Assembly: GCA_002269645.1 (NCBI GenBank)
Contig: NIVC01001143.1
Location: forward strand, 62,001 to 126,000
DNA: 64,000 bases
Source: Macrostomum lignano
Lineage: Eukaryota
Direction: 5' to 3'
This document shows positions 21,901 through 24,900 of this stretch, in pieces. The first letter of the stretch is position 1, and each line of letters starts with the position of its first letter. The translations under genes and the position numbers were made by a program. The notes below the pieces were generated by a model that saw only the letters and a program-made list of their open reading frames with translations, did no database searches and was not told the DNA's origin.

Positions 21901-24900
21901 AAACTGTTTGGCTAGCAAAAGGCTTGTGGGGTAGCCTTAAATGTCGCCCTTCCCTTCCCTAATTTTTTCAGATTTCCATTAGCTTTTTAGCTAATGGAAA
22001 TTTAGCTTATGGAAATTTTAGCTTATTAGCTTTTTACTTAGCTAATAAGTAGGCTACAGTAGATTCAATTAGCTAGAACTTGTCGGCTGGCAGTTGTCGG
22101 CTGGCAGTTTTCCGGCTGGCAGTTTTCTCGGCTGGCAGTTTTCTCGGCTGGCAATTGTCGGCTGGCAGTTGTCGGCTGGCAGTTGTCGACTGGCAGTTGT
22201 CGGCTGGCAGTTGTCGGCTGGCAATTGTCGGCTGGCAGTTTTCCGGCTGGCAGTTGTCGGCTGGCAGTTGGGATGGACCCCCCATTAACGAAATGATCCT
22301 CAAAGTCCCGAGTTAAATATTTATGTTCAACTTTATCTATTAAAAACATTTTTTGAATTTTTGTTATAAATCCACCTTTCCAGCAACATCTTCAAGGAGA
22401 TTCAGAACAACTCGGTGGAGATCTGGAAGTTCAACATGTACTTCCTGGTGCACGAGTACCACACCCGGCCGGTGCTGGCGGTGCCGTTCGTCATCGTGGA
22501 GGATGTGTTCCGCTTCATCAGATTTCTGGCCTGCCGCCTGCCCTGCTGCCGCAAGGGAAAAGAGGGTGAGTGCGGAGCTGAGGGTGGGGCGTTGAGGGTG
22601 TGGGACTGAGGGTCTGGGACTGAGGGTGTGAAACTGAGGGTGTGGGACTGAGGGTGTGGGACAGAGGGTGTGGGACAGAGGGTATGGGACTGAGGGTGTG
22701 GGACTGAGGGTGTGGGACTGAGGGTGTGGGACTGAGGGTGTGGGACTTAGTTCTGGCTAAATGTTAGCCAGAAGTGTTAGACAGAGTCTACATGTTAGAC
22801 ACAGAGATAAGTGTTAGACAAAGCCCACATGTTAGACACAGAGATAAGTGTTAGACAAAGCCTACATGTTAGACACAGAGATAAGTGTTAGACAGAGCCC
22901 GCATATTAGACACAGAGATAAGTGTTAGACAAAGCCCACATGTTAGACACAGAGATGTGTTAGACAAAGCCCACATGTTAGACACAGAGATGTGTTAGAC
23001 AAAGCCCACATGTTAGACACAGAGATGTGTTAGACAAAGCCCACATGTTAGACACAGATATGTGTTAGACAAAGCCCACATGTTAGACACAGAGATGTGT
23101 TAGACAAAGCCCACATGTTAGACACAGAGATAAGTGTTAGACAGAGCCCGCATATTAGACACAGAGATAAGTGTTAGACAAAGCCCACATGTTAGACACA
23201 GAGATGTGTTAGACAAAGCCCACATGTTAGACACAGAGATGTGTTAGACAAAGCCCACATGTTAGACACAGAGATAAGTGTTAGACAAAGCCCACATGTT
23301 AGACACAGAGATGTGTTAGACAAAGCCCACATGTTAGACACAGAGATAAGTGTTAGACAGAGCCCACATGTTAGACACAGAGAAAAGTGTTAGACAGAGC
23401 CCACATGTTAGACACAGAGATAAGTGTTAGACAGAGCCCACATGTTAGACACAGAGAAAAGTGTTAGACAGAGCCCACATGTTAGACACAGAGATAAGTG
23501 TTAGACAGAGCCCTCATGTTAGACAGCTAGATCGCCTCGCCCTCCCGGCCTCACCCAGGCGGGCAGTTGCTAGCCAGCTTCAGGCACGAGCTGATGGTTT
23601 TCGAAAGCGAGATGGCCAGACGCCTGATGGCCATGCTGAAGGCCAAGCAGTCTCAGACGCTTGAGATGCGGGTGAAGACCGTGACAAACAGGTTTGTTCA
23701 GGCCAGCCAGGCTTCATCCGGCCGGCCTCATGGGTGTTGTGGCTTCCTCTCTCTGTCGTACTGAGTTGTCTTTCTCATCTTCCTCTATTTGCACGCACTT
23801 TTGTCTTTATTTTTTTCTACCTGTAGTCATTAGTGCTTTGTTCAGCCCTTTATAAACTCCAGCTCCTGAACCAACAGGTACTTAATGTATTAAAGGACAT
23901 AGAGGGACAAAATGAACCTTTTTGGTTGTCATTTGTATGTTCTGATTGGTTAAAAATTGTACTTTGACAGTGCGAACTGTGCTGTGCATAGCAATGTACA
24001 CTAGATTGTGCATAGCAATGTACACTAGACTGTGCAAAGCAATGTACACTAGACTGTGCATAGCAATGTACACTAGACTGTGCATAGCAATGTACACTAG
24101 ACTGTGCATAGCAATGTACACTAGACTGTGCATAGCAATGTACACTAGACTGTGCAAAGCAATGTACACTAGACTGTGCATAGCAATGTACACTAGACTG
24201 TGCATGCAATGTACACTAGACTGTGCATAGCAATGTACACTAGACTATGCATAGCAATGTACACTAGACTGTGCATAGCAATGTACACTAGACTGTGCAA
24301 AGCAATGTACACTAGATGATGCATAGCAATGTACACTAGATGATGCATAGCAATGTACACCAGACTGTGCTCAGTACACCGGGGTCGCATCAGTGCACAG
24401 TGCTAATCAGAAAAGCAACCCGTGCCCGCGCATGGCAACCAGGCGAGTCCGGGCGCCTCAGCCAGCGCGAGGAGGCAGACCTGCGCAACTTCACCACCCA
24501 CTGCCTGTCGCTGGTGAACACGCGGCAAGAGCTGGAGACCAAGGGGCGCATTGAGCAGCGAATTCAGAGCATCTACAGCGGGTGAGGAACGCCTGGAAGG
24601 CGCGCCAATCTCCAGTGGCGCCAGCAGCGAACGGCCAGAATTTCGCCTAATTTAAACTACTTTGAGCAGTAGCGATTAACACCAAACTGGTTTGCACTCA
24701 CAGCTGCTTAAACCTAACTACGCTCGTAATTGACTGAAGTTTTTCCTTTGCATCTACTACTTTCTAATAATATTCGTTGTATACTGCTCACAAGTAGAAT
24801 TTTCTATTTAATATTGTTTGCCTAACAGAATAATTGATTTAACTTCCGAAAAGAACAACAAAGATGCGCGAACTCTGAACTCCCAGGCTGGACGAGCTGT

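Follow-up and report, generated by a model that had tools for sequence, protein, structure and literature searches.

Does the TRPM channel gene of Macrostomum lignano encode its rib helix, the link from the membrane domain to the large cytosolic ring, in one version or in two? We analyzed a 64 kb window of M. lignano DNA (the whole stretch, whose numbering is used throughout) that carries this gene on the + strand, and in which an earlier note on the same DNA (the original prediction) had proposed a pair of mutually exclusive exons, here called exon A and exon B. The sequence leads us to favor, with some reserve, the view that A and B are a tandem pair of mutually exclusive alternative exons and that the gene probably makes two channel isoforms. 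Each exon would encode a complete alternative version of this segment, from the rib helix through a turn into the beginning of the pole (coiled-coil) helix, and the pair would have arisen by duplication of one ancestral exon that is still single in Schistosoma japonicum. The fuller proposal, that the gene swaps the whole rib helix and coiled-coil entry by mutually exclusive splicing and that the inter-subunit coupling surface would differ by four charges per subunit, is put forward more tentatively, at slightly less than an even chance.

The gene spans ~9944–27328 and contains the expected TRPM features, namely S5-pore-S6, a TRP box, the N-terminal TRPM homology region and a C-terminal rib/pole region. 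Comparison of the two predicted isoforms with solved TRPM2/4/5/8/3/7 chains gave E values of 1e-23 to 1e-12, and the TRP-box exon (22384–22565) aligned to the TRP domain of the TRPM2/4/5/8 structures. Searched in full with HMMER, a profile made from both isoforms returned 2440 relatives, the top five of which were M. lignano predictions in UniProt; near-identical UniProt models bear the names TRPM1 and LSDAT_euk. The structure alignments and the family search bear out the original assignment of the gene to the TRPM family, as a flatworm TRPM. The segment in question is organized as follows (nt, nucleotides; GC, guanine-plus-cytosine content).

22384–22565, + strand: constitutive upstream exon (exon 15 of the original prediction), encoding the TRP helix (IWKFNMY) and the post-TRP helix.
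22566–23558, + strand: intron ahead of exon A, 993 nt, GC 0.47, mostly tandem repeats.
23559–23691, + strand: alternative exon A, 133 nt, phase 1 to 2, predicted to encode the rib helix and, beyond a turn, the opening turns of the pole helix.
23692–24442, + strand: intron separating A and B, 751 nt, GC 0.43.
24443–24581, + strand: alternative exon B, 139 nt, phase 1 to 2.
24552–24554, + strand: TGA within exon B, read when A and B are both included.
24582–24886, + strand: intron from B to the downstream exon, 305 nt, GC 0.41.
24887–25148, + strand: constitutive downstream exon (exon 17 of the original prediction), entered in phase 2 and left in phase 0, continuing the pole helix.

Reading and translating the sequence confirmed the previously given exon coordinates, lengths, phase 1-to-2 course, in-frame joining to LDELYK and peptides of A and B; a minor correction, outside the exon-pair claim, is that the downstream exon ends at 25148 (GT at 25149–25150) and not at 25150. 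The borders of both exons are of the U2-type GT-AG class. Exon A follows a strong, heavily pyrimidine-rich acceptor (...CCTCACCCAG) and ends at a weak donor (GTTTGT), and exon B follows a weaker acceptor (...GGCAACCAG) and ends at a consensus-like donor (GTGAGG). A strong acceptor with a weak donor in one exon and the reverse in the other is a pattern common in regulated exons. The peptide of the TRP-box exon ends ...CCRKGKE, and this exon is left in phase 1, with one G of a Gly codon, ahead of a GTGAGT donor at 22566. Exons A and B each open with GC, completing this Gly codon, so that the junction reads ..AAAGAGG/GCGGGCAG.. into A and ..AAAGAGG/GCGAGTCC.. into B. The last 2 nt of either exon belong to a codon completed by the G at 24887 (G/CTGGACGAGCTGTACAAG, translated x-LDELYK), and the downstream continuation is the same whichever of the two is spliced in.

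Both exon lengths are 1 mod 3; the frame is thus kept only in mRNAs that include a single one of them. Translation of the joined exons A and B gave ...TVTNRRVRAPQ...GDQGAH followed by a stop, which is the TGA in exon B that had been predicted for double inclusion, and this stop stands upstream of two further exon junctions. When both exons were skipped in translation, the frame shifted and a stop was met within the downstream exon. A and B are adjacent in one gene and on one strand with no constitutive exon between them; the intervening sequence consists of the 751-nt intron with repeat-derived open frames that carry no coding signature. As a separate observation, the donor of exon B (24579–24584) reads GGG/TGA in frame, and retention of the intron after B would truncate the protein just past the rib helix, leaving neither pole helix nor coiled coil.

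Codon composition supports the view that A and B are both coding exons. In the proposed frame, GC at codon positions 1/2/3 was 0.53/0.35/0.84 for exon A and 0.60/0.42/0.89 for exon B, compared with third-position values (GC3) of 0.84–0.96 and second-position values (GC2) of 0.28–0.43 in the constitutive exons of the gene (GC3 0.90 in the TRP-box exon) and an overall GC of 0.41–0.47 in the three local introns. In both exons the third-position bias falls exactly in the frame that is used upon single inclusion. Among 7466 stop-free 44-codon segments sampled across the 64 kb on both strands, a signature at least as extreme as that of A was seen in 2.1% and one at least as extreme as that of B in 1.5%, and the segments matching them were mostly real exons of the TRPM gene and of neighboring genes.

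Chance was further gauged by listing every open AG..GT interval of 90–200 nt that lies between the flanking exons and has suitable phases. This gave 78 frame-compatible intervals, nearly all within intronic tandem repeats; the repeat-borne intervals had GC3 about equal to GC2 and no TRPM similarity. A GC3 above 0.8 together with a positive score against the rib-helix profile described below was found at the A and B loci only, each of which showed a few alternative borders within the enumeration. Frame compatibility by itself is therefore unremarkable, and it is its combination with the codon signature and the profile score that is remarkable. The repeats themselves comprise a 14-mer (12 copies) and a 37-mer (21 copies) upstream of A (22578–22747 and 22772–23525) and a 24-mer (16 copies) in the A–B intron (23982–24370); they stay open in some frames and generate dozens of spurious frame-compatible "exons".

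The peptides of A and B are too short for single-sequence searches to be informative, and a family profile was built instead; Pfam holds no model covering the rib region. From an alignment of 117 TRPMs of other animals over the post-S6 region, the 41 positions matching the exon were excised (consensus ..L.lFEkec.enYlrk..ke...sleerVk.tser; family pattern L..FE..C..Y...K......E.R[VI]), and the significance of scores was judged against 5000 composition-preserving shuffles per peptide. Exon A scored 21.1 bits, a value reached by 0 of 5000 shuffles (maximum 13.4), and exon B scored 8.6 bits, a weak match reached by 7 of 5000. The two alignments were near full-length (profile positions 6–41 for A, 2–38 for B) and in one register, in which the Phe of FE, the family Cys position and the E.R[VI] motif coincide. 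When the whole window was scanned in six frames (1206 segments), A ranked first (18.8 bits; independent E value, iE, 1e-4) and B third (5.5 bits), and no third copy of the rib exon was detected. Exon A is thus, by clear homology, a canonical rib helix, and it matches the family pattern at the distance expected from the TRP and pole helices. Exon B may be a much more diverged rib helix, as weakly indicated by its position, register, length and phases together with the modest profile score. The earlier statement that both peptides resemble the TRPM helix accordingly stands clearly for A and weakly for B.

The closest single matches were TRPM2-like proteins of nemerteans, from Tubulanus for A and from Lineus for B (ungapped, ~31% identity). 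Whole isoforms, with A or with B, were colinear with the post-TRP-helix region of solved TRPM2 (zebrafish 6DRJ, residues ~1120–1180; Nematostella 6CO7), a region made up of the rib helix and the beginning of the pole helix; the downstream exon (24887–25148) aligned to the latter. Single-sequence AlphaFold2 models, of low confidence (predicted local distance difference test scores of 61 and 57), showed a helix-break-helix at matching positions in both isoforms: the break of 2–3 residues lies 11–13 residues before the exon end, and the second helix runs into the downstream exon. The net charge is +4 for peptide A and 0 for peptide B, and their hydrophobic faces differ as well. A 7-residue match of B (ADLRN.T) to a post-TRP insert of a Calicophoron TRPM was rejected as chance; it was absent from other flatworm sequences and the order of elements would be reversed.

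A protein search returned schistosomatid TRPMs, two loci of which were compared with the M. lignano gene. A homologous exon was found in S. japonicum (positions 18662–19016 of locus L001), where it is 355 nt long and carries a long acidic insert ahead of the rib helix. It is entered in phase 1 past the post-TRP helix and left in phase 2 inside an Arg codon before LEEIY, so that both intron positions and phases are as in M. lignano; its length is likewise 1 mod 3, and the L[ED]E[LI]Y motif is shared. The most economical reading is a single ancestral exon that would have been duplicated in the lineage leading to Macrostomum and then diverged. When the length of an exon is not divisible by three, any copy of it is automatically frame-exclusive with the original. 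The "old exon duplication" of the original prediction is therefore kept as the most economical reading, with the qualification that A and B show no significant mutual similarity.

Several results weigh against a functional pair of exons. In the window-wide profile scan exon B by itself was non-significant (iE 2.1), and the direct A–B alignment (7 of 47 columns identical, ~15% identity) was non-significant too, its local score of 20 being reached by 1082 of 2000 shuffles (54%). Alignment to TRPM structures had been proposed as a check; whole isoforms align to the TRPM2 rib and pole as described, but either peptide alone found no TRPM among solved structures, the best matches being a designed protein and keratin at E ~1. 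The donor of exon A (GTTTGT) is weak, and no public model contains exon A alone. A search of flatworm orthologs for both exons had likewise been proposed, and it did not bear out the pair: no second rib exon was found within 35 kb in the S. japonicum locus by profile and self-search, nor in the locus of Trichobilharzia szidati, whose rib region has diverged too far for the profile to recognize. With no second rib exon in these two schistosomatid loci, conservation of the pair outside Macrostomum is unsupported. Finally, docking/selector RNA pairing of the Dscam type was not detected above chance; the sole inverted repeat, 12 nt at 92% (23857–23868 / 24526–24537), is within chance expectation for 2.4 kb.

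Three of these points, namely the weak profile match of B, the poor donor of A and the single exon of the schistosomatid relatives, are also what would be expected if just one exon were used and the other were a duplication relic, or a recently silenced exon still retaining its open frame, splice sites and codon bias. We regard this alternative as unlikely, although it is the one to be taken most seriously. An unused exon is expected to drift toward intron composition and to gain stops or indels, whereas A and B both keep intact AG/GT borders and open frames, with GC3 of 0.84 and 0.89 against an intron GC of 0.41–0.47. Moreover, the divergence between A and B implies an old duplication, which would have left a dead copy ample time to decay.

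If A and B are mutually exclusive, the question arises of how exclusivity would be achieved. Steric exclusion is an unlikely route because the 751-nt intron between A and B is too long. The reading frame would remain as the mechanism, in that double inclusion and double skipping both lead to premature stops before later exon junctions, and nonsense-mediated decay would remove these off-frame products. Removal of this kind would require no special RNA structure.

The public protein models of this locus or of near-identical copies disagree with one another, and the exon pair would explain this disagreement. Of the UniProt entries, A0A1I8F3N8 ("TRPM1") contains exon B, A0A1I8F1M8 joins A to B through intron read-through, and the model P0160 (accession beginning A0A1I8) also holds both peptides. 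We read these models as gene predictions rather than transcripts; what they show is limited to the coding potential that gene finders recognize in A and in B. No transcript-derived Macrostomum sequences were returned from the protein collections searched, exact look-ups of the exon-B open frame and of an S. japonicum expressed sequence tag protein gave no contigs and hence no further copy of the locus, and the paper on the cloning of M. lignano TRPM-PZQ holds no isoform information. As a side observation, the models (A0A1I8F3N8, A0A1I8F1M8, A0A1I8FGH3 and A0A1I8F1N6, listed as P0003–P0007, and P0160) are fragmentary and partly frame-shifted, and two of them are named after spurious features ("t-SNARE coiled-coil homology" and "Protein kinase domain").

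The models A0A1I8F1M8 and P0160, which hold both peptides, raise the possibility that other or extra splice sites bring A and B into the same mRNA; the channel would then carry two rib-like helices one after the other, as drawn in A0A1I8F1M8. Alternative in-frame acceptors and donors do exist around A and B. However, both models run past the donor of A into the intron and across intronic sequence ahead of B, where the coding GC3 signature is missing, and other models of the locus contain frame-shifted stretches, so that they look ab initio. In addition, none of the 152 TRPM-family hits retrieved, M. lignano models included, contained two rib segments or two long rib-helix matches. We consider double inclusion very improbable.

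The premature stop created by inclusion of both exons invites another explanation: B could act as a regulated "poison" exon or be an open frame due to chance, and its inclusion after A would merely add the TGA and lower expression. The weak rib-helix homology of B would fit such a role. Yet the GC3 bias of B lies in the frame read when A is skipped and not in the frame that bears the TGA. Exon B also aligns full-length and ungapped to other TRPM rib helices (including that of Lineus) in a register set by its splice sites, and its phases equal those of A at near-equal length. This explanation is improbable in our estimation. All three alternatives are countered by what both exons retain, namely unbroken frames, splice sites and a strong codon bias in the productive frame; the case is strongest against double inclusion and the poison exon.

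Mutually exclusive exons that arose by tandem duplication are common in ion-channel genes, examples being the 5N/5A exons of vertebrate sodium channels and exons 8/8a of CACNA1C. Like these, A and B are adjacent exons of shared phases and near-equal length that would provide alternative versions of one structural element. In the sodium-channel and CACNA1C pairs one exon is chosen per mRNA; the equivalent choice in M. lignano is predicted from sequence. Unlike in those pairs, the element concerned is a cytosolic assembly and coupling helix and not a transmembrane segment, and the M. lignano copies are far more diverged (~15% identity).

Within the TRP superfamily, alternative exons have been described in insects, for TRPL in Bactrocera dorsalis (PMC6137742) and for Pyrexia and the first exons of TRPM in Pieris rapae (PMC7143563). 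These are likewise mutually exclusive exons in invertebrate TRP-family genes, but they concern N-terminal residues or alternative first exons, and none lies in the rib/pole region. A further case was met among the retrieved sequences: the RefSeq isoforms X1 and X2 of an invertebrate "TRPM8-like" gene (XP_069140028.1 / XP_069140029.1; P0168 / P0008), each of 1444 residues, differ in a single 47-residue block at residues 810–856, at pre-S1/S1. This block looks like the footprint of a mutually exclusive exon pair, a likeness drawn from the protein isoforms, and it lies at pre-S1/S1, unlike the rib-helix site in M. lignano. Both M. lignano isoforms align to the rib helix seen by cryo-electron microscopy (TRPM2 6DRJ/6CO7, TRPM4 and TRPM3), of which the retrieved TRPMs have one segment per protein. 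The original prediction knew of no such pair in vertebrate TRPMs; our literature search found no report of an alternative rib-helix exon in TRPM either, nor was any annotated case present among the retrieved TRPMs. The M. lignano locus is probably a known kind of arrangement at a TRPM site for which no report was found.

What the exchange might do to the channel is suggested by TRPM3. At rest, its negatively charged rib helix contacts a positively charged MHR1/2 loop of the neighboring subunit; activation by heat or agonist is accompanied by loss of this contact, and charge changes there shift activation (PMC12819145). The two M. lignano isoforms would differ in the rib-helix surface offered to the N-terminal MHR domains of the neighboring subunit, given their predicted net charges of +4 and 0. 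By analogy with TRPM3, the exchange may shift the equilibrium between resting and activated states without abolishing assembly, and a shift in coupling or in partner preference between isoforms is plausible. If the pair is real, it would show that alternative splicing can reach the assembly scaffold of TRPM channels, and the locus would be a natural experiment on the contact between rib helix and MHR that sets the activation threshold of TRPM3. It could possibly be a means of controlling which subunits co-assemble as well. Two rib helices on an otherwise identical channel would also provide ready-made constructs for testing coupling.

Beyond the exon pair, the gene ends shortly past the coiled coil, and no model contains further C-terminal exons. 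Its last exon is the following.

26855–27328, + strand: final exon of the gene (KDLGLPP...DYARLQ, then stop), with a second predicted coiled-coil stretch.

The intron that follows the LDELYK exon contains, at 25153–26830, ~1.7 kb of (GCCT)n and related 4–8 nt repeats, which create a spurious 746-residue open frame (24906–27146) full of CLSV/CLPA repeats. Farther upstream, the intron between the pore exon (20145–20374) and the S6 exon (21464–21614) holds long repeat-unit open frames in all three + frames (20460–21440), presumably another tandem repeat. Elsewhere in the window, the domains of two adjoining open frames point to a non-LTR (long terminal repeat) retrotransposon, and pieces of four neighboring genes were recognized.

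47396–50862, + strand: two adjoining open frames with endonuclease-reverse transcriptase and RNase H domains.
2072–2350, + strand: leucine-rich-repeat exon of a neighboring gene.
4192–5844, − strand: C2H2 (zf-met) zinc-finger protein, piece of a neighboring gene.
37262–38116, − strand: short-chain dehydrogenase, piece of a neighboring gene.
59075–59914, − strand: Exo84-like protein, piece of a neighboring gene.

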